The position numbers and the translations under genes were made by a program. From NCBI GenBank assembly GCA_002811645.1, contig PDIP01000028.1, positions 124,001 to 188,000 of the forward strand: a stretch of DNA of 64,000 nucleotides, read 5' to 3'. The DNA comes from Corallochytrium limacisporum Hawaii (lineage: Eukaryota > Protista > Pluriformea). This document shows, in pieces, positions 1,052 to 57,111 of this stretch (position 1 is its first letter; every line of letters starts with the position of its first letter). The notes below the pieces were generated by a model. It made no database searches, had not been told where the DNA came from, and saw nothing but the letters and a program-made list of their open reading frames with translations.

Positions 1052-2947
1052 TCATTCATTGACAAGTCTTGCGTTGTACGTAACCATTTCGCCCAGACCC
1101 TTAACAATTTGGCGCGGTAGCGCATCATATTTGAACTTCTTCGCAACATCCGCTCCCTCAGTTTTCACAGCTTCGATTACGGAGCCGTCGACATGGACGC
1201 GTCCAGTCATTGCCGTAGTCTGCATCCGGCTGGCCAAGTTGACGGTATCACCAATAAGAACCCATCGACGATTTACTGTGCCCAAAATGTCTCCCTGCAC
1301 GCAACCACTACTCAACCCCAGAGTAACCTTGCCGGCAATGCCCCATGGATTGTCCTCGGCACCGAATACGCGCATGTTGCTTACCGCAATCGCAAAGTCC
1401 AGAGCCGTGCTGGCATGAGCTGAGTTTTCTTTCGGGCATCCCGTAATCGAAAACATGGTATCGCTCAAGACGTCAACCTTGGTGATACCGCCAATGCTAT
1501 CCCGGACATCATCTATGCGTTGCCATACATCGTTCAAGTAGGCCAGACGGATATCAGAGTCCAAGCACCCTATAGGTTCGACTTGGATGAAGATGACAGT
1601 GGTGCTATCATAATAGCGGTCTGTATTCTCCAGTTCACCCTCTAGTAGCTGCGCCATAACGTCCTCAGGCATCAGAGTGCCCAGCACTGTGTCACTCAGC
1701 CTCTTAGCATTGCTGACAGCCCGAGCATCCCCCGTGATAGCAGCAACTTCGTGCTGGTGAGTAATCTCCAGCATGCAGTAGTTAATCGTAGAAGATAGGA
1801 CAAACTTAGCCGCCAAATCAGCGAAAACGAAGCCAAGGTTGCTGGCGAAGGGACTGAGGATATCGAAGTAGGTTAGGAAGAATATCAACGGAAACAGAGC
1901 CCAGGTTGTGTAGGACTGGTGGCGGAGCATTCGTAGGATGCCGCTGGAATCTTTTGCTAGAGCAGCCTCCATGCCGTTCAAGTCGCTCTGCACCGCGGAC
2001 ATGCGCCGCAGCAAGGCAGAAGATCGGCGGGCGTGACGTTGCTTCTCTTCGACGTCTAGAAAGCGCATAGCACTCTCAACGCGCTTGAGAGAACCGGTGT
2101 ACATGCTGAACATCTCCAGCTGCAGCTGCATAAAACAGACACCAGACACGAGAAAGAAGGGCAGAGCCATCCAGAACTCAGGAACGATACTACCAAGCAG
2201 ACCACACAGTGATGTTACTGCACTGAGGCTCATGGTGGTTGCGACGTTGTTGACCGTTGGGTACGTCATGTTCTCAACCATGAGCAGAATACCTGGACAT
2301 GTGAAAATCCATTCCAGGTATCGCACAAAATACATCTGGGACTTAGTGTACGGAAGAGTAACCATAGGTGACATGTCTAATGCGCACAGCAAGGCCGTCA
2401 GAAGCGCGATTCCGTTGACCTGACACATGAGCATGCACATGACCTTTCGCTGCTCACTGATACTGACCAGCATGGAAGTCAAATCAAAAGTCATGGCCAT
2501 AGCAAAGAAACATACGCAGACCTCGTCGGTTATCCGCTCGTACTGTATATCCCAATCAATGATGTCGTCATCCTCTTCATCGAAATTCCAGTCCCCGATG
2601 GCCGACTGAGGTTCCCACCATTCCAAACCAAGCAGCTGCTGGCCGTAGAACAAGGTAATGATGAGAGTGATCATGTAAGCGATTGTGTTGTACCAGAAGA
2701 ACTTCTTGGATGCCTCGCGCAGGCGCTGAGCAGACATTTCAGCTGACTGCCAGTGATGGTTGGCACCCCTTGCCTTGACCGATAGCATGTCAACACCGTG
2801 ATCATCTTCTGACATTATGCTGCTAGTGTCGCTACAGCGCCGACTTGACTCGCTTGTGGTACTAGAATACTTGCGCAGATCGGTTAAGGAGTCTTCCTCC
2901 TCTCCCAGGGTTGCGAACTCGGATCGAGACGCAAGTGCGGCTGCCAT
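1052..2947 (-). CDS. Type-1 rhodopsin / class III nucleotidyl cyclase fusion (RhoGC/CyclOp-like enzymerhodopsin, 8 TM), cyclase site partly degenerate
   Basis: First ATG at 2947 (631 aa). TM3 RYLEWIFTCP; TM6 TWALFPLIF; TM7 DLAAK with the retinal Lys at 1805-1807; extra TM0 (FFWYNTIAYMITLIITLF). Linker VLGTLMPEDV. Cyclase motifs LNDVW, KVDVLSD, LSSG, WVLIGDTVNLASRM, VKGLGEMVTY. Confidence 0.93.
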   Translation of the reverse strand: MAAALASRSEFATLGEEEDSLTDLRKYSSTTSESSRRCSDTSSIMSEDDHGVDMLSVKARGANHHWQSAEMSAQRLREASKKFFWYNTIAYMITLIITLFYGQQLLGLEWWEPQSAIGDWNFDEEDDDIIDWDIQYERITDEVCVCFFAMAMTFDLTSMLVSISEQRKVMCMLMCQVNGIALLTALLCALDMSPMVTLPYTKSQMYFVRYLEWIFTCPGILLMVENMTYPTVNNVATTMSLSAVTSLCGLLGSIVPEFWMALPFFLVSGVCFMQLQLEMFSMYTGSLKRVESAMRFLDVEEKQRHARRSSALLRRMSAVQSDLNGMEAALAKDSSGILRMLRHQSYTTWALFPLIFFLTYFDILSPFASNLGFVFADLAAKFVLSSTINYCMLEITHQHEVAAITGDARAVSNAKRLSDTVLGTLMPEDVMAQLLEGELENTDRYYDSTTVIFIQVEPIGCLDSDIRLAYLNDVWQRIDDVRDSIGGITKVDVLSDTMFSITGCPKENSAHASTALDFAIAVSNMRVFGAEDNPWGIAGKVTLGLSSGCVQGDILGTVNRRWVLIGDTVNLASRMQTTAMTGRVHVDGSVIEAVKTEGADVAKKFKYDALPRQIVKGLGEMVTYNARLVNE

Positions 2948-19499: not shown

Positions 19500-22400
19500 T
19501 CACTGTAGCTCGTTCAAGGGGGCAATCTGGTTGATGTAAACACCTACCATGCCATTGTTGAAGATAAGGTGCCACTCCCACGGCTTGAACACCGCCGGAG
19601 AGACAGCAAAGGTATACTCCTGCGCGTTGGATGACACCAGCACCGACCAGGGTTCGTCGTCAGTGGAACCTTTCCAACGGCGAGGAAGCTCCAGAGTGAA
19701 GGTCTCAAAGCCGGAGACACCCAAACTTTCAGCGCTGGTGCCATCGGTGAAGAGCAGCGGTAGAATGCCGTAGGCGATCAGCCCCTTGCGGAAGTCCTCA
19801 CCGAAAGACTGAGCAATGATGGCCCGCACACCGAGCTCCCGGCATGACTTGACCGCCCACTCACGGCAATTTCGCATGCCAAAGTCACGGCCACCAAGAA
19901 TAATTACATCGACATCTTCGCGGCGGTATCGGGCAGCCGCTTCGTGAATGGGCATGACTTCACCAGTTGGCAGATGCATAGTTTTGCCAGCTATGTTCTG
20001 GCTTTCGTTTGCAGCAGAATTAGTGGCATCGTTTCTACCACTGTAATGGCCACGGGGACTGCCGTAAGAGTCACTCTGACCCGTAGGCATGCTGTAGTAG
20101 CCGCTAGCATTTGCACCGGTCCATTGCTGACGCTGATTGGAGGAAATGTGCTGATGATGTTGCTCTTGCATAAGTAGCCGATTGCGAACAATGGCACTGG
20201 CAAAGGCAGCACGGATCATCACCTCGTGGTTCGCACGACGACTACCATAGGAGCCGTATTGTCGATTCTGTAGACCGAGCGACTTGAGGTATAAACCACT
20301 CGCACTCTGTCGACGAATCATGCCTGCCGGAGAGATGGCGTCACAGGTCACACTGTCACCAGCAAAAAGCAGGCAACGTGCCCGCCGGAAAAGACGGTTG
20401 ACCATCAGTGCTTCGGAAGAGCTCCGGCCAGCCATGCCGTCAAAACCAAGTTGACGAACCGCGCCACGACTTGGACGCAATTCTGTGGATTCCGGATCCC
20501 AGGGATACATTTCGAAGCGTGGGCACTGCAGAGAGTCCCATAGGCGGGTGCCTTCTGCGATGCGGCAGGACAGGTCCTCGACCAGCGAGGGCACTACCAC
20601 GGCCGATTCCACCGCGCGAATCTCCTCACGAGACGGCCATAGGTCTGCCAGGAACACTGGCTCGCCGGTCTCCGCGTCAAAACCAAGTGGATCGGTGGCA
20701 AAATTAATGTTTACGGTGCCAGCCAGAGCGTAGGCTACGACTAAAGGTGGTGATACGAGGTATGCTCCTCGAGTGGACGGATGTACGCGGCGTTCGAGCT
20801 TCCGGTTACCGGAGAGAATACTCACGGCCACGATGCTTTCCTTGGCGATCGTTTCATCGACTTCAGGCATTAGCGGAGCGGTCTCGCTGCGGCATACAGC
20901 GCAGCCAAAACCGGCATTGTGGAAGCCAAGTTGTTCCAAGTGGCGCAGAACTCCGGAATCTTCCAGGTACGACTGCACAGTACCGCCGCCAGGGGCAAGC
21001 TGTAGACGAATGTGCGGCAAGGGCTTGAGACCGCGCTGGAGGGCAGCTTTGGCAAGAAGACCAGCACCGAGCATGACGGTTGGATTGGACGCGTTGGTAC
21101 ACGCACTGATGGCCGCAATCACGACACTACCGTGCCTCAAGTGCACGGGGCGCTCAATGTTCTTCTTGCCCGTCCAGAGAGTGAGTTTCTTCTTGCCATC
21201 CTCCAGAGTCTCCTGCTGAAATTCCTCAAGATATTGAGGTACCTGGCTGGCAGTCATGCAGCGACTGCGAAATTCCTCGGGCAAACAAACGACAGTGTCC
21301 AGGCGTTCGTCATCCACACCAAAACCAATCTGTGGATTTGGGTCCGTAAGTGCCTTTAGGAAGGTCTCCTGCATGTCTGTCACGGCAATACGATCCAGAG
21401 AGCGACGGGGACCACTGCAAGTGGGCTGCACCTCAGTAAGGTCTACCATCTCCAGGCGGGTGTAACGATGACTCAGTTCGTCCGCGGTCTCAGTCTTCAG
21501 GTCCTTTTGGCTCCTGTACAGGCCCAGACACTTGAGTAGGTCCTTCACAATATCAACACTCTCCCACGGAGAGGACGCATCGGTAGCATCGTCCATCTGT
21601 GAAGTGGCCGAACTTCTAGATCCAGCGCAAGAGCCCACAATCTCGCTAAAGCTGGAATCGCCCTTGCTGTTCCCGAGCACAACCCAGTGGCGTTTCTTTG
21701 TGGCCAGGCGACTCTGTTGCAAATGCTGTGATGCAATGTCGTCGAATGGGAAGAAGGCGATCTGTGCGTCGTACTCTCCACACATGTGTGCCACAGTACA
21801 TCGGTCAGCCACGCTCAGATTGCTCACACCAGGACCAACAAACTCAACAATAGCCCCATTCAAGGATTTGATCTTCAGACGCTTGGTTATGGCAAGTACA
21901 ATGTCTGTGGAGGTCGCCAGTGGATCTACGTCGCCGTGCAGGTAGACGCCGACCACATCACGTATGGACAAAGGCAAAGACAGACCGAACATTGCCATTT
22001 CTGCGTCCAAAGATCCCACAGACCAAGCCAGCTCACCCAATCCGTTGATCAGACCGACGTGGCTGGCATTGCCGACCAGAATATCAGGGTACAGGAACGC
22101 ATCTTTGGAGTTCCCGTTATTGCTGTTCCCGAAGGACCCACTCTTACGCAGACGGCTCGTTAGTACTCCAGCCAGGTCACTGGTACCGCCAACGCCCACC
22201 TCGCCGCTGCCTGTGCGGATAGAGCCGGCATTGCTCACTGACGTGCGATTCATTACAACCTGTGCCATGCGCTCCAAATTTACCTGGTGCACAATACCGC
22301 AGTCGGGAGGTGTGACGTTCACGTTTTCCATCTGCCGACTGGCCCACTTCAGCAGACGGTACATCTCCTTGCTCTGCTCAAAGTTTGCAAGCTGGGCACG

Positions 22401-23297
22401 GGTCATAGCGGCCTGGAGGGTGGTTTTGTCCTGTAGCGGACGTGGAATGTCTTCGATCTGTCCAGTACTCCCCTTGACATTCCGATCACGACGGGAGGGG
22501 GACGAGTACATCCCACTGTCTTCATTGACGGATCCCATGTGACTTGAGTCTTCATAGTCGCCACCAAAGGAATAGTTTGAGGAGCGGTCACTGGCCCTGC
22601 TCCGTGTGCCAGTGGAACGGTGAGTCTGGGAGCCTCCAACACTGGAGCCTCCTCCGACACTGCTGGTTTCACTGCCTCCACCCATAACGCTACCTTTCTT
22701 GGTTGCACCACTGCCGCCGTCGAGGAGAATTTCTGTGGGGATCACCGGACGGATGGTACTGACATCGCCACCCTGCCTGCCCACTTCCTCCCGAATAACA
22801 GCGATGTCCATGATGGCATTTACGGCTGCATAGTCCTGCATGACCACCTGTGAAGGAGGGATGGCCAGATCGATAGTGTGTCTTACGTCCTTGGCGGTGA
22901 TCACTCCTGAGGACGCGCTGCTTTCTCTTGCTGCACTTACGGCGGCGACGTGCTTTTCCCAATTGAGCAGGCGCTGGATGTCAGGATGATTTTTTACCTC
23001 TCCAACTGATGGGGCATGGGTTGGATCCAGACCACCGCTGCTCATTGTCGCAAGCAATTCGTTAGCCACCCGGCGCACAGTAGCCTCTAGAATGATCTTG
23101 AGCACATACGGATAGTTCTTGAGCTTGTCCGCGCCACCAACAATCGTCTCTAAGTCGATGTGATGGACCTCAATCTTCTGTCGCTTGACGATGGTGACTG
23201 ATCCGCTCTTGGTCAATTTGTGTGTGCTCGACCTAGGAGTGGTAGCTTCCCTCGTAAGGGCTACTGTCCGCTCGAAGCTACCGCACAGCTTCGTCAT
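19500..23297 (-). CDS. Iron-regulatory protein / cytosolic aconitase family member, probably catalytically inactive (IRP2-like)
   Basis: GIVHQVNLE, STDIVL, VEFVGPG, ISACTNASNP, GCAVC, SGNR, SPPLVVAYALAG, ISPAG, YGSRR. Several catalytic positions substituted; four low-complexity insertions. Confidence 0.9.
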   Translation of the reverse strand: MTKLCGSFERTVALTREATTPRSSTHKLTKSGSVTIVKRQKIEVHHIDLETIVGGADKLKNYPYVLKIILEATVRRVANELLATMSSGGLDPTHAPSVGEVKNHPDIQRLLNWEKHVAAVSAARESSASSGVITAKDVRHTIDLAIPPSQVVMQDYAAVNAIMDIAVIREEVGRQGGDVSTIRPVIPTEILLDGGSGATKKGSVMGGGSETSSVGGGSSVGGSQTHRSTGTRSRASDRSSNYSFGGDYEDSSHMGSVNEDSGMYSSPSRRDRNVKGSTGQIEDIPRPLQDKTTLQAAMTRAQLANFEQSKEMYRLLKWASRQMENVNVTPPDCGIVHQVNLERMAQVVMNRTSVSNAGSIRTGSGEVGVGGTSDLAGVLTSRLRKSGSFGNSNNGNSKDAFLYPDILVGNASHVGLINGLGELAWSVGSLDAEMAMFGLSLPLSIRDVVGVYLHGDVDPLATSTDIVLAITKRLKIKSLNGAIVEFVGPGVSNLSVADRCTVAHMCGEYDAQIAFFPFDDIASQHLQQSRLATKKRHWVVLGNSKGDSSFSEIVGSCAGSRSSATSQMDDATDASSPWESVDIVKDLLKCLGLYRSQKDLKTETADELSHRYTRLEMVDLTEVQPTCSGPRRSLDRIAVTDMQETFLKALTDPNPQIGFGVDDERLDTVVCLPEEFRSRCMTASQVPQYLEEFQQETLEDGKKKLTLWTGKKNIERPVHLRHGSVVIAAISACTNASNPTVMLGAGLLAKAALQRGLKPLPHIRLQLAPGGGTVQSYLEDSGVLRHLEQLGFHNAGFGCAVCRSETAPLMPEVDETIAKESIVAVSILSGNRKLERRVHPSTRGAYLVSPPLVVAYALAGTVNINFATDPLGFDAETGEPVFLADLWPSREEIRAVESAVVVPSLVEDLSCRIAEGTRLWDSLQCPRFEMYPWDPESTELRPSRGAVRQLGFDGMAGRSSSEALMVNRLFRRARCLLFAGDSVTCDAISPAGMIRRQSASGLYLKSLGLQNRQYGSYGSRRANHEVMIRAAFASAIVRNRLLMQEQHHQHISSNQRQQWTGANASGYYSMPTGQSDSYGSPRGHYSGRNDATNSAANESQNIAGKTMHLPTGEVMPIHEAAARYRREDVDVIILGGRDFGMRNCREWAVKSCRELGVRAIIAQSFGEDFRKGLIAYGILPLLFTDGTSAESLGVSGFETFTLELPRRWKGSTDDEPWSVLVSSNAQEYTFAVSPAVFKPWEWHLIFNNGMVGVYINQIAPLNELQ

Positions 23298-24491: not shown

Positions 24492-25276
24492 NNNNNNNNN
24501 NNNNNNNNNNNNNNNNNNNNNNNNNNNNNNNNNNNNNNNNNNNNNNNNNNNNNNNNNNNNNNNNNNNNNNNNNNNNNNNNNNNNNNNNNNNNNNNNNNNN
24601 NNNNNNNNNNNNNNNNNNNNNNNNNNNNNNNNNNNNNNNNNNNNNNNNNNNNNNNNNNNNNNNNNNNNNNNNNNNNNNNNNNNNNNNNNNNNNNNNNNNN
24701 NNNNNNNNNNNNNNNNNNNNNNNNNNNNNNNNNNNNNNNNNNNNNNNNNNNNNNNNNNNNNNNNNNNNNNNNNNNNNNNNNNNNNNNNNNNNNNNNNNNN
24801 NNNNNNNNNNNNNNNNNNNNNNNNNNNNNNNNNNNNNNNNNNNNNNNNNNNNNNNNNNNNNNNNNNNNNNNNNNNNNNNNNNNNNNNNNNNNNNNNNNNN
24901 NNNNNNNNNNNNNNNNNNNNNNNNNNNNNNNNNNNNNNNNNNNNNNNNNNNNNNNNNNNNNNNNNNNNNNNNNNNNNNNNNNNNNNNNNNNNNNNNNNNN
25001 NNNNNNNNNNNNNNNNNNNNNNNNNNNNNNNNNNNNNNNNNNNNNNNNNNNNNNNNNNNNNNNNNNNNNNNNNNNNNNNNNNNNNNNNNNNNNNNNNNNN
25101 NNNNNNNNNNNNNNNNNNNNNNNNNNNNNNNNNNNNNNNNNNNNNNNNNNNNNNNNNNNNNNNNNNNNNNNNNNNNNNNNNNNNNNNNNNNNNNNNNNNN
25201 NNNNNNNNNNNNNNNNNNNNNNNNNNNNNNNNNNNNNNNNNNNNNNNNNNNNNNNNNNNNNNNNNNNNNNNNNNNN
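24492..25276. other. Assembly gap (785 N)
   Basis: Run of N. Confidence 1.
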
Positions 25277-26106
25277 ATAAATAATCATATAAATCACGAT
25301 CCGGTATATATTTTCGAACGAAAATTTTGGTTGGATACGGAGTATACATTCAACTCAGAGGATAGTACCAGTACCATATATCGCTCTCTTGGAGTGTGAT
25401 GATGACGATGCCTGGTGGGGTGTTTGCTCTATGGAAACCGAAGATCTCAAGAAACACGTTCGGCAGCAGAGTACTCATGATCAGCAGAGTGTGGCGGACA
25501 TCTATTCAGGCAGCAGATAAAAAATGGGCTGAGTGTAAGAGGATTGAGCAGGGCTGGCCAGGGATCAGCTGACTGCCTGCCCCCTCTCCCTATATCGGCT
25601 GAGTAAGAGCAGCGCTCCCACCGAACTGCAAGCTCATTTCCCCTAAAGACCCGCCCGGTTATCCTTCTCCGTCCACTTCCCGCTGCCCCGTGCTCAGACC
25701 CAAACGCACCTGGTTTTTCGTGCCACGGGCCTTGCTTTGCCTTCCTCACAGTCATCGCCGTATATTCAATATGAAAATATTCCAAGCGATGAAAGCCGTC
25801 CGTGCATTATCAGTGGGGGGGGCCCGGGGCGGGGGGGGCAGACGCGGACGGTGCGGGACAGAGAACGGTGCCAGTGTTCTCAAGGATGGTGGTTAACTAT
25901 GTCGCATCAATCACTCAGATCGCAGCGCTTCCTCGCCCCTCTACATCCACGTATGTGTCATTTCTTCGGTATAGAAGACAGCGATGCGATTTATTTATAG
26001 ATGGTCAGCTGACCTAGAAAAGATTGAGCACCCTATCCTATCGCCTGACAGGCCTGCATTGGGTATTAAAGACGAACCTTGACTGTGTAGACTGGCCAAG
26101 GAACGG

Positions 26107-54075: not shown

Positions 54076-57000
54076 ATGGAAGCTGCAGGAGCCATAACGG
54101 GTGTCGGCAACACCCAAAACGACCGCAAACATGCGTTTGAATGGCATACCTATGCTAAATGGTCCTACTGTGGGGTATGTTCGAAACTGATGTGGGGATT
54201 CCACCGACAGGGCTTGAAATGTAAGGAATGTGGACTTGACGTTCACGACCACTGTGTAAGACTTGTGCCAAAGTGTCTTGGAGCAGATGTAGTGGCCAAT
54301 ATGGGAAACCTCAGAGACAGAAAGGCAGCTGCTATCCAAACTTTACGCAGCCAAGAGTTCCGGGACGTCGCGGTCACCATTGTGAGTGCAGCCAACTTGG
54401 CAAAGAAGCAAATGTTCCATACCCCTGACCCGTTCGCGGTGCTTGACGTGGATGGAAAGATCACTGAGACCCCTCCTTGCATACGTACGCACAGTCCGGT
54501 ATGGAACTTTAAGCAGATAGTGGCCATCAAAGAGGATTCAACGATAATCATCCACATCTACGACAATAAGAAGAAGATTAACGGTGGCAAAGACGATGGC
54601 TTCTTAGGTATGGTGGCTGTGCCCTTCACTGCATTCTCACAGATGAGTCTCCAGTCTGGTGCGACGATTGCCTTTCGGTTGAAGAAACGGACAGCGAATG
54701 ACACGGTTACTGGTATGGTCGTGCTCAAGATGAAGTATACTGGTACCGCAAAGAAACAAGCCACTGGGTTGGAAAGGATTGTCAAGTCACAGATTATTAC
54801 GACCGGGCGAAGGAACCGCCATGTGAGCATGTCTGGCCTGGGCGATAGTTTAAGCAAAGAAGACGAAGATCCACGAACTCCACGCGATGACATTAATGTG
54901 CACCACCTAACCGTGGTGGACGAGAATGTCATAGATGAACACCTTGAAGCTGATGCCCTCGACATGGATGACCAAGAGTACGCAATTAGCCTGTCAAAAC
55001 TGGGAACGAGTCCTGGTGCGCGTAGCTACATCAATCCAGATTTCGAAGTGAGGTTACGCGATATTGCTGCGGAACAAGACGTCAACCTGCCGGCAGGATG
55101 GAAAGAAGAGGTTGATGACACGGGCCGGACTTACTACGCCAATCCAAAGAACCGTGAAAGCTCTTACACGGTACCTACCACAGAGCTCAAGACAAGGACG
55201 TACAAGAGCCATAGGCCTGAAATTCTTGCTCAGGCGGCCAAGGCGGGGGAGGAGAAGCTTACACATGAACACATGCCTGACTCCGCGCTTCGAGGTCAAC
55301 ACTCGCGCCAGGGATCTCTGAGTTCGATAGATGCCAGAGAGCTTCAAGGACCGAGCCATTTGGTGCCAATGGTCCTTCCTGCACCGGAAGCAAAGACTCT
55401 CGAGGGCGACGGCATTGTTGTGCGCTGGTTGCACCCTCATTTCGTAGGAGAGGAGAATGGCAAAGCCAAGGATGTGGTGACTCCGCAGATGCAGAACCTC
55501 GAGTACACTGTGTATGTTTGGCAGGAAAATGAATTGGAGTCGGATCTGGATATTGTCTACAAGGGACAGGACACAGAGCATCTCATCAAAGGGTTGGTAC
55601 CGGAGCGTCCTTATCAGTTCGTAGTGAGCGTCAAGAACAACTACGGAGTGTCTGATCTGAGCCCCCCTTGCACACAAGTGGTGGCTCCGAAACGTAAATC
55701 ACGCAAGGAGAAGGAAGCAGAGAAGCGGGCGGCCCAGGCAGAGCACGATAATCGTCCACATTGCCCGTTCATGATGGCTGGATTCTGCAGGTATGGCAAT
55801 CGCTGCCGATACAGTCACGGGGCCGGCTTGCAGACTGAAGACGATGTGATGGTTGCGCTCATGGCGGCGTCCCTCAACGAGGATCCCAATGCGGGATATG
55901 CCGCTGCCATTGCAGCATCTCTGATGGATCAACAGAAACGCAAGGCACCCATCAATGCGGAACATATGAGCACGTTTCAACGTCATCTGCACAAGAAGGT
56001 GTCGCGATTCCGCAAGGACCTACCGAGGAAGAAGGGAGAGGTGCACATAACCATTGACCGGGAGAACGTCGTCGAGAGCTCGTTGAAGCAATTGACGGAG
56101 ACATCCACAAAAGAGCTGCGTAAGCGTCTGTTTATTCATTTCAGCAACGAGGGAGGCCTTGATTACGGTGGTTTGGCACGTGAGTGGTTGTACCTTCTCA
56201 GCCAAGAACTCTTTACACCGTTCTACGGGCTGTTTGAGTACAGCAAAAGCGACAACTATACGCTGGAGATCAATCCCAACTCAATTCTCAACAAGGACTG
56301 TGTGCCTTACTTCACCTTCATCGGCTGGATCCTAGGTATTTGCATTCTTCATGGTCAATTCATTGATGCGGCCTTTGTGAAGCCTTTGTACAAGCGTATG
56401 CTGGGCAAGCCCATCGAACTAGCAGACCTGCAGAACGTGGACCCTTCCTTCCACTCCTCCTTGTTGTGGATTCTGGACAACAGCATAGAGGGTGTGCTGG
56501 AGCTTACCTTCTCCGTAGATGCGGATCAGTTTGGTGAGGTAGATACTGTGGATCTTGTGCCGAACGGTCGGAGCATACCCGTGACTGATCAGAATAAGGC
56601 AGAGTTTGTCAGTCGTGTTGTGCAGTGGCGGGCCACCCGCAACACAGAGAAACAATTTGATGCTATGATGACTGGTCTAAAAAGATTCGTGCCACCGGAT
56701 TCACTAACGAGTTTTGATGAAAAAGAGTTGGAGATTCTCTTATGTGGCCTGCGGAAGTACGATCTGGACGACTGGAAGAAGCATACCGAGTATAAGGGCT
56801 TTGAGCCAGAGGATGCAATCGTCAAGTGGCTGTGGGAACTACTTGAGGAATTCGGACGCGACGAGCAAGGTAGATTCCTTCAGTTTGTGACCGGCACGTC
56901 TCGGGTACCCTTAGAGGGCTTCCAGGCACTCGCTGGCAGTGATGATCGCCAAAAGTTCTGTATCCAGAAGCTTGAAGGGGCCACGGACCGGTTACCGGGG

Positions 57001-57111
57001 AGCCATACGTGCTTCAACCGTTTCGACTTGCCTGAATACGGCAGCAAGGAAGAGCTCAAGGAAAAGCTTGGCAAGGCAATGGATGGCTTTGAAGGCTTTG
57101 TGGACGAATGA
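54076..57111 (+). CDS. Nedd4/Smurf-family HECT E3 ligase with C1-C2-WW-FN3-CCCH-UIM-HECT architecture
   Basis: C1 (54130-54276); C2 (PDPFAV, GFLG); WW (LPAGW..GRTYYAN); FN3 (YQFVVSVKNNYGVS); CX7CX5CX3H; AIAASL; HECT (GLDYGGLAREW, FLQFVTG, SHTCFN). Confidence 0.93.
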   Translation: MEAAGAITGVGNTQNDRKHAFEWHTYAKWSYCGVCSKLMWGFHRQGLKCKECGLDVHDHCVRLVPKCLGADVVANMGNLRDRKAAAIQTLRSQEFRDVAVTIVSAANLAKKQMFHTPDPFAVLDVDGKITETPPCIRTHSPVWNFKQIVAIKEDSTIIIHIYDNKKKINGGKDDGFLGMVAVPFTAFSQMSLQSGATIAFRLKKRTANDTVTGMVVLKMKYTGTAKKQATGLERIVKSQIITTGRRNRHVSMSGLGDSLSKEDEDPRTPRDDINVHHLTVVDENVIDEHLEADALDMDDQEYAISLSKLGTSPGARSYINPDFEVRLRDIAAEQDVNLPAGWKEEVDDTGRTYYANPKNRESSYTVPTTELKTRTYKSHRPEILAQAAKAGEEKLTHEHMPDSALRGQHSRQGSLSSIDARELQGPSHLVPMVLPAPEAKTLEGDGIVVRWLHPHFVGEENGKAKDVVTPQMQNLEYTVYVWQENELESDLDIVYKGQDTEHLIKGLVPERPYQFVVSVKNNYGVSDLSPPCTQVVAPKRKSRKEKEAEKRAAQAEHDNRPHCPFMMAGFCRYGNRCRYSHGAGLQTEDDVMVALMAASLNEDPNAGYAAAIAASLMDQQKRKAPINAEHMSTFQRHLHKKVSRFRKDLPRKKGEVHITIDRENVVESSLKQLTETSTKELRKRLFIHFSNEGGLDYGGLAREWLYLLSQELFTPFYGLFEYSKSDNYTLEINPNSILNKDCVPYFTFIGWILGICILHGQFIDAAFVKPLYKRMLGKPIELADLQNVDPSFHSSLLWILDNSIEGVLELTFSVDADQFGEVDTVDLVPNGRSIPVTDQNKAEFVSRVVQWRATRNTEKQFDAMMTGLKRFVPPDSLTSFDEKELEILLCGLRKYDLDDWKKHTEYKGFEPEDAIVKWLWELLEEFGRDEQGRFLQFVTGTSRVPLEGFQALAGSDDRQKFCIQKLEGATDRLPGSHTCFNRFDLPEYGSKEELKEKLGKAMDGFEGFVDE

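Follow-up and report, generated by a model that had tools for sequence, protein, structure and literature searches.

A rhodopsin-cyclase with half a catalytic site in the holozoan Corallochytrium limacisporum, and its candidate partner

The locus and its host

Close to the start of the window (the whole 64,000 nucleotide stretch of DNA that was analysed) lies a gene, here called A, which is read from 2947 to 1052 on the minus strand as an intact ORF of 631 aa without an internal stop or an intron. Two Pfam domains, Bac_rhodopsin (aa 148-293, E 6e-14) and Guanylate_cyc (aa 446-624, E 4.5e-20), together with the ORF define a type-1 rhodopsin joined directly to a class III cyclase in a single chain. 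The kinase and receiver domains of a histidine kinase rhodopsin or 2c-Cyclop are absent between the two, no C-terminal PDE domain of the RhoPDE type was found by Pfam, and NCBIfam has no model for A or for the second protein, B, described below. In the AlphaFold model (pLDDT 81), an additional helix (TM0) precedes the seven helices, TM7 continues as an unbroken helix into the coiled coil, and the C-terminal part has a class III cyclase fold. The first-pass annotation had proposed an 8-TM type-1 rhodopsin, a linker and a class III cyclase, and this is borne out by the ORF, Pfam and the model.

The top structural match of the model is the RhoPDE of S. rosetta (7d7q; Z 28.1 over 262 residues, TM0 included), and its cyclase superimposes on the RhGC cyclases of Catenaria and Blastocladiella with an rmsd of about 2 Å. 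RhGC cyclases (6sir, 5oyh and 6ao9) are also the top PDB sequence matches, with E values of 1e-21 to 1e-19. All cyclase motifs quoted earlier for this locus are present, and the RhoGC/CyclOp-type layout that had been suggested agrees both with these matches and with trees that place the cyclase of A within the RGC clade. A is almost certainly an RGC/CyclOp family protein, and within that family it is outside the homodimeric, RGC(a) and NeoR subtypes.

The assembly consists of 24,109,830 bases in 286 contigs, and for C. limacisporum the published genome size is 24.1 Mb and the intron density 0.0 per kb (PMC5560861). The neighbours of A are intronless eukaryotic genes with a GC3 of 0.53-0.65, that of A being 0.60, and contigs from a second study and isolate span the A locus and its upstream flank. 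Six of the nine coding differences in this isolate leave the protein unchanged, where chance predicts a synonymous fraction of 0.23 (P 0.006), and in the folded core the count is six of seven (P 0.0008). These second-study contigs are assembled sequences that are only guessed to be RNA, and RNA support is weak. The intronless neighbours of like GC3, the second isolate and the synonymous excess together indicate that A is native, holozoan and under purifying selection. A fungal contaminant contig is ruled out by the neighbours, by the second isolate and by the presence of B in EukProt as Clim_evm8s57. Hence, the host is, with near certainty, the holozoan C. limacisporum; the first-pass annotation had described the genome as apparently non-fungal and holozoan-like.

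Elsewhere in the window, a homologue of IRP1/cytosolic aconitase (19500-23297, minus strand) is 1265 aa long and so exceeds the human protein by about 350 aa, and a HECT ligase at 54076-57111 (plus strand) combines C1, C2, WW, fn3 and CCCH domains in an unusual Nedd4-like architecture. Low GC and spurious ORFs at 24.5-25.3 kb are due to a scaffold gap, a run of N at 24492-25277. No TGASTCA site lies near the A gene and there is no excess of this site in the 64 kb window.

Rhodopsin and cyclase domains of A

Table 1. Features of the gene for A and of its product, with positions in the window
Feature	Position	Strand	Evidence
CDS of rhodopsin-cyclase subunit A, 631 aa, intronless	1052..2947	-	ORF and Pfam; identical protein in EukProt; second-isolate contigs with mostly synonymous changes
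Ser/acid-rich N-terminal tail, aa 1-78, two R[RK]xS motifs; cytoplasmic (inferred from 8-TM topology)	2714..2947	-	
Extra N-terminal helix TM0, aa 79-105, typical of enzyme rhodopsins	2633..2713	-	Model helix H2-28; aligned to RhoPDE 7d7q from model residue 1
Seven-helix retinal-binding core, aa 135-392	1772..2545	-	Pfam, model, structural alignment
TM3 motif R209, counterion E212, W213, T216, C217 (bacteriorhodopsin R82/D85/W86/T89/T90 positions), without the second NeoR carboxylate	2297..2323	-	
S242 at the bacteriorhodopsin D115 position	2222..2224	-	
TM5-TM6 insertion of ~38 aa, modelled as a helical extension, with RRSS and RRMS (PKA/PKG-type) motifs	1958..2071	-	
TM7 D377-x-x-A-K381, second counterion and Schiff-base Lys	1805..1819	-	
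Coiled-coil linker and cyclase-transducer element (LMP, P427)	1655..1774	-	Lys-to-Pro 46 aa
Class III cyclase domain, RGC clade, aa 444-625	1073..1618	-	Sequence matches, structural match, trees
Degenerate metal/phosphate loop: Q455 for the first metal Asp (CaRGC D457), P-I-G for N460-F461-T462	1568..1585	-	Residue roles from PMC5967339
D492 at the guanine-reading E497 position; S495 for G500; D496, the second metal Asp (D501), kept	1460..1474	-	
T542 replacing the gamma-phosphate Arg (R545)	1322..1324	-	
Base/transition-state side: R561, V563 (C566 position), intact N570-x-x-x-R574	1226..1267	-	

The counterion Glu of RYLEW, which had been assigned to 2312-2314, and the DxxxK motif at 1805-1819 are found exactly there, as E212 and as D377 and K381 (Table 1). 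In TM3 and TM7, A has the combination E/T/C with D..K and B has E/A/C with D..K, and the E/D/E carboxylate triad of NeoR is missing from both subunits, being E/T/D in A and E/A/D in B. The earlier observation that Thr-Cys follows the TM3 Glu without the extra NeoR carboxylates is therefore correct (T216-C217), and A as a near-infrared pigment of the NeoR type is ruled out on these residues. From the same residues, absorption in the visible range is expected for the rhodopsins of both A and B; in B, the Ala at the T89 position may shift it towards the red. The D115 position is an Asp in B, in the related protein of Syssomonas multiformis and in most visible-light RGCs, and a Ser in A and in NeoRs. 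The TM5-TM6 insertion was found in no other protein among the 23 aligned. Speculatively, S242 and this insertion may be regulatory elements.

The roles of individual cyclase residues are known from the CaRhAC structure, where one monomer contributes D457, D501, N460-T462 and R545, which hold the metal and the triphosphate, and the other contributes E497, C566, N573 and R577, which act on the base and the transition state (PMC5967339). The set D457, D501, R545, N573 and R577, carried in one chain by the homodimeric RGC(b) proteins, is incomplete in A owing to Q455 and T542. On the other side of the site, A retains D492, R561, N570, R574, K616 (equivalent to K612) and the VKGxG loop, and the loss of NxxxR that typifies NeoR has not occurred. 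The base-reading positions of A, with Asp at E497, Arg at H564 and Val at C566, are non-canonical when compared to the usual Glu/Cys pair.

As A is without the first metal Asp and the phosphate-binding residues, an A/A dimer should not bind metal-GTP and, going by established class III cyclase chemistry, is very probably catalytically dead. The suggestion that the locus encodes a light-to-cyclic-nucleotide sensor thus holds with respect to the protein family, but A is very unlikely to be active alone because the metal/phosphate half is degenerate. For the same reason, the gene is very unlikely to serve singly as the optogenetic part that had been envisaged, and a partner would be needed.

A candidate partner and a predicted composite site

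Exactly two rhodopsin-cyclase fusions are present in the genome, A on contig 173 and B on contig 57. B (817-2367 of locus L002) is ~510 aa long, is identical to the EukProt entry mentioned above, and lies between genes for a receiver-domain protein and HPPD. It has a very short N-terminus and Ala at the T89 position. In the residue table, B keeps D457, F461, T462, E497, D501 and R545, and has Ser, Thr and Lys at the C566, N573 and R577 positions and no GxG loop, the change from NxxxR to TxxxK being the one seen in fungal NeoR. Reciprocal half-sites are therefore present in the two chains, as in heterodimeric class III cyclases, and the same kind of split is found in a two-domain adenylyl cyclase on contig 230 of this genome and in human AC5. 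In Rhizoclosmatium globosum, NeoR has T/K in place of NxxxR, supplies the metal Asp and is inactive alone, and the base-reading residues come from RGC1; turnover is confined to one site, and emptying the second site (RGC1-D379A) raises light activity ninefold (PMC12264004).

Since A and B each have half of a working site, they probably pair to make cGMP in the light, and A most likely works as the catalytic-side subunit of a heterodimeric cyclase. We consider it reasonably probable, on the residues of the two chains, that A and B form an obligate heterodimer with one GTP site that evolved independently of the chytrid NeoR/RGC pair, and the same degree of belief attaches to this reading including its two conventional chromophore pockets. 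That such a pair would be active is likely, and it is a little likelier still that its substrate would be GTP rather than ATP; light activation of the pair is predicted with the same assurance as the substrate. In A, B, the Syssomonas protein and most fungal RGC and NeoR sequences, 46 residues separate the Schiff-base Lys from the transducer Pro, a spacing that would permit an in-register coiled coil. Counting against pairing are an identity of only about 25 % between A and B, the unlinked genes, each flanked by unrelated ones, and the very long branch and non-canonical Asp/Val base-reading pair of A.

In the proposed mechanism, A and B would dimerise through their membrane domains and the coiled coil to form one composite site, where B would bind the Mg/Mn-triphosphate and A would read the base and stabilise the transition state, the second site being dead. 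Retinal made by the cell's own crtB, crtI, lycopene cyclase and Blh would bind both subunits, and visible light acting on one or both chromophores would turn on the synthesis of cGMP, which would act on PKG or on a cyclic-nucleotide-binding channel. Kinase feedback through the RRxS motifs of the A insertion is a speculative addition.

Genes for these steps, which the first-pass annotation had proposed searching for, are all present. A phytoene-synthase-like (crtB-like) gene lies beside two CrtI desaturases on contig 230 (21.2-29.3 kb), a lycopene cyclase is on contig 175 and Blh is on contig 64; an RPE65/CCO-type oxygenase was not found in the genome, Blh being present instead. Besides a kinase with three cNMP domains, for which the best matches are PKGs, and an HCN/CNG-like channel, the genome encodes six class I PDE domains and a PKA regulatory subunit. 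It thus has what is needed to supply retinal, to read out cGMP and to reset the signal, and the link of these parts to A and B is inferred. C. limacisporum is not known to have a flagellated stage, and the output may therefore not be phototaxis of the zoospore type.

Several further genes of this genome were recorded. The carotenoid cluster lies about 12 kb from the cNMP-domain two-cyclase gene on contig 230. Three stand-alone type-1 rhodopsins with a DTD motif (contigs 171 and 77) are proton-pump-like, in a non-photosynthetic osmotroph. Two cNMP-binding domains are fused to EF-hands and a mitochondrial carrier on contig 110 (L033:1360-3261), and a cNMP domain is fused to a D-2-hydroxyacid dehydrogenase on contig 182. 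Two related cyclases on contigs 267 and 231 mix GC and AC signatures, their base-reading positions being Glu/Arg/Thr.

Other explanations for the state of A were weighed. A could be a non-catalytic light sensor or regulator that signals via the TM5-TM6 insertion or by binding B, with B weakly active alone or with another cyclase. This would fit the most divergent cyclase of the set (branch 3.2), the altered E497 and C566 positions, the Ser at G500 and the unique insertion, but A lost one half and retained NxxxR, K616 and the VKGxG loop, as would be expected had selection acted on a composite site, and the TxxxK of B matches NeoR, whose cyclase is inactive alone; we regard it as unlikely. It is somewhat less likely again that the pair forms and is an adenylyl or dual-specificity cyclase, or is inhibited by or insensitive to light. 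The Val at C566 is neither the Cys of GCs nor the Asp or Thr of ACs, Asp replaces Glu, and with Ser at the D115 position the chromophore may be slow or bistable. However, there is no Lys at the 497 position, an Arg lies two residues before the Cys position as in animal GCs, the characterised RGCs are all light-activated GCs, and PKG is present in the genome. The long branch and lost catalytic residues might also be those of a decaying duplicate in a system that is being lost, though an intact 631-codon frame, a full retinal pocket, the exact linker length and the excess of synonymous differences between isolates, both overall and in the folded core, make decay very improbable. An obligate A/B heterodimer remains the preferred reading.

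Relatives, origin and comparison with known systems

A profile search of 1.8 billion representatives recovered about 25 rhodopsin-cyclases. The named matches other than A and B were all fungal, none was from a choanoflagellate, filasterean or ichthyosporean, and no orthologue of A appeared among the matches. In a word-index homology search, A and the rhodopsin region of the Syssomonas protein each retrieved only themselves, because they are too divergent for that tool. A search of the ESM Atlas returned clusters of giant-virus cyclases, which were uninformative for the fusion, and one candidate relative (P0002) was rejected as an unrelated bacterial cyclase. The nearest relative of B is a 530 aa protein of Syssomonas multiformis (45 % identity; EukProt EP00128 P000236), which has a complete catalytic set with Ala at the C566 position and is therefore probably a homodimer.

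Trees of the separate domains had been recommended, and in them the cyclase of A falls within the RGC clade (SH-aLRT 99; 100/99 in another tree), apart from the other cyclases of the genome, animal GCs and HKR cyclases. Its place inside the clade is unstable: one tree makes A the sister of B, another puts it in a basal position and a third inside the fungal group, and its branch is very long. The trees of the rhodopsin, of the cyclase and of the concatenated domains all leave B and the Syssomonas protein outside the fungal group, moderately supported (92/81, 98/94 and 76/85; 92 when long branches were removed). With few outgroups and no RhoPDE (SrRhoPDE, like CaRhGC/BeGC1, was left out), the trees are weakly rooted. 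In AU tests, grouping B with NeoR was rejected (p-AU 8e-6), which rules out B as a NeoR orthologue, as was grouping the pluriformeans with Chytridiales (0.0008), so that descent from the Chytridiales RGC(a)/NeoR duplication is rejected; grouping with Allomyces was also rejected (0.012). A with B (0.36 and 0.25) and A with B and Syssomonas (0.24) were not rejected. A and B have 18 rare residues in common, against 4-16 for any fungal or environmental sequence. We favour a gene duplication within the Corallochytrium lineage after which the two copies lost function reciprocally, and the T/K change in B would then be convergent with that in NeoR.

The first-pass annotation had left the choice between an ancestral and a horizontally acquired gene. 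The AU tests reject a recent transfer out of those chytrid or blastoclad branches that were sampled, and an RGC is also found in Syssomonas. An ancient transfer from or to early fungi, or separate acquisition of A from a fungal donor, is a serious competitor, given that no other holozoan RGC is among the named matches and that one careful cyclase tree puts A inside the fungal group (97/80) with B and Syssomonas outside. Against this stand the position of B and Syssomonas in all three kinds of tree, the rejected nestings, the A and B grouping, which was not rejected, the rare residues, and the GC3 and lack of introns that A shares with its neighbours. On balance, descent from the opisthokont ancestor is slightly to be preferred over ancient transfer. 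SrRhoPDE is the closest solved structure to the rhodopsins of both A and B, and an Asp in TM1 is common to A, B, the Syssomonas protein and SrRhoPDE, which suggests a common holozoan origin of these rhodopsins. A fuller scenario, in which the RGC fusion arose in the common ancestor of animals and fungi, choanoflagellate RhoPDE arose from it by replacement of the cyclase with a PDE, and Corallochytrium independently arrived at a heterodimer with two chromophores and full reciprocity, the natural counterpart of the ninefold more active RGC1-D379A/NeoR, is put forward tentatively as a minority possibility.

Environmental sequences were also noted. The cyclases of two RGC fragments, P0155 and P0216 (ENA ERZ4203368 and ERZ4204489), branch between the pluriformean and fungal sequences and are possibly from an unsampled opisthokont lineage. 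In two further rhodopsin-cyclases, P0141 (L051:1431-2876), which is from the same sample as the intact P0216, and P0175 (L052:904-2088), the catalytic residues are degenerate on both sides. P0242 (L054:374-2539; JGI 3300019003; 65 % GC) combines a RhoPDE-type rhodopsin (E 2e-57 to SrRhoPDE) with a complete guanylyl cyclase whose grouping is with sGC-type cyclases of animals and not with those of RGC, and is apparently a second, independent rhodopsin-GC fusion; the gene recurs in L049 and L050, from Tara and other marine samples.

The RGC fusion has been placed in the fungal ancestor, with heterodimers limited to Chytridiales and Cladochytrium (Galindo 2022, Broser 2023), and RhoPDE and RGC have been treated as distinct solutions (Brunet 2019). 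No description of an RGC outside the fungi, or of any RGC from Corallochytrium or Syssomonas, was found in the searchable literature, subscription reviews such as the 2021 Annual Review of microbial rhodopsins being outside its scope. A and B are both in EukProt and may already be known to specialists. The presence of RGCs in two holozoans of the Pluriformea would shift cGMP signalling under light control to the animal branch of the opisthokonts, possibly to their root, and a second independent heterodimer with a NeoR-like T/K change would be a clean case of convergence. The predicted dead second site of the A/B pair mirrors the published gain-of-activity mutant RGC1-D379A. Because both genes would be needed, a two-part light-gated cyclase of this kind would, as a tool, lend itself to intersectional control. 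Corallochytrium grows in axenic culture.

In animal soluble guanylyl cyclase, the metal-binding and NxxxR residues are split reciprocally between alpha and beta. This split, and that between C1 and C2 of membrane adenylyl cyclases (the AC5 pattern), is the same as in A and B, but these enzymes belong to another cyclase clade and have another sensor, and are analogies only. The homodimeric fungal RGC/CyclOp proteins (BeGC1, CaRhGC; RGC(b)) share with A the 8-TM type-1 rhodopsin, the coiled-coil length, the cyclase clade (100/99) and the E/T/C and DxxAK chromophore motifs. A differs from them in its holozoan host, in having half of the catalytic residues, in the 38 aa insertion and in its Asp/Val base-reading positions. 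The Syssomonas protein, from the same phylum-level group (Pluriformea), has the architecture of B and differs by its complete catalytic set, and no A-like partner was found in Syssomonas. SrRhoPDE (7d7q/7cj3), the closest solved rhodopsin by both sequence and structure, has the TM1 Asp that fungal RGCs lack and, like B, an NCN(L/V)(E/D)Q end to TM7, whereas its effector is a PDE and that of A and B is a cyclase.

The system most like the proposed A/B pair is the RGC(a)/NeoR of R. globosum and other Chytridiales, with the same predicted single composite site, A in the role of RGC(a), and B in that of NeoR with the same T/K. The origin would be independent, neither A nor B has the NeoR carboxylate triad, and the head-to-head arrangement of the chytrid genes, which are clustered (PMC10622942), is absent, A and B being on different contigs. 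A has lost the metal site that RGC(a) keeps, and hence both the A/A and the B/B homodimers should be dead.
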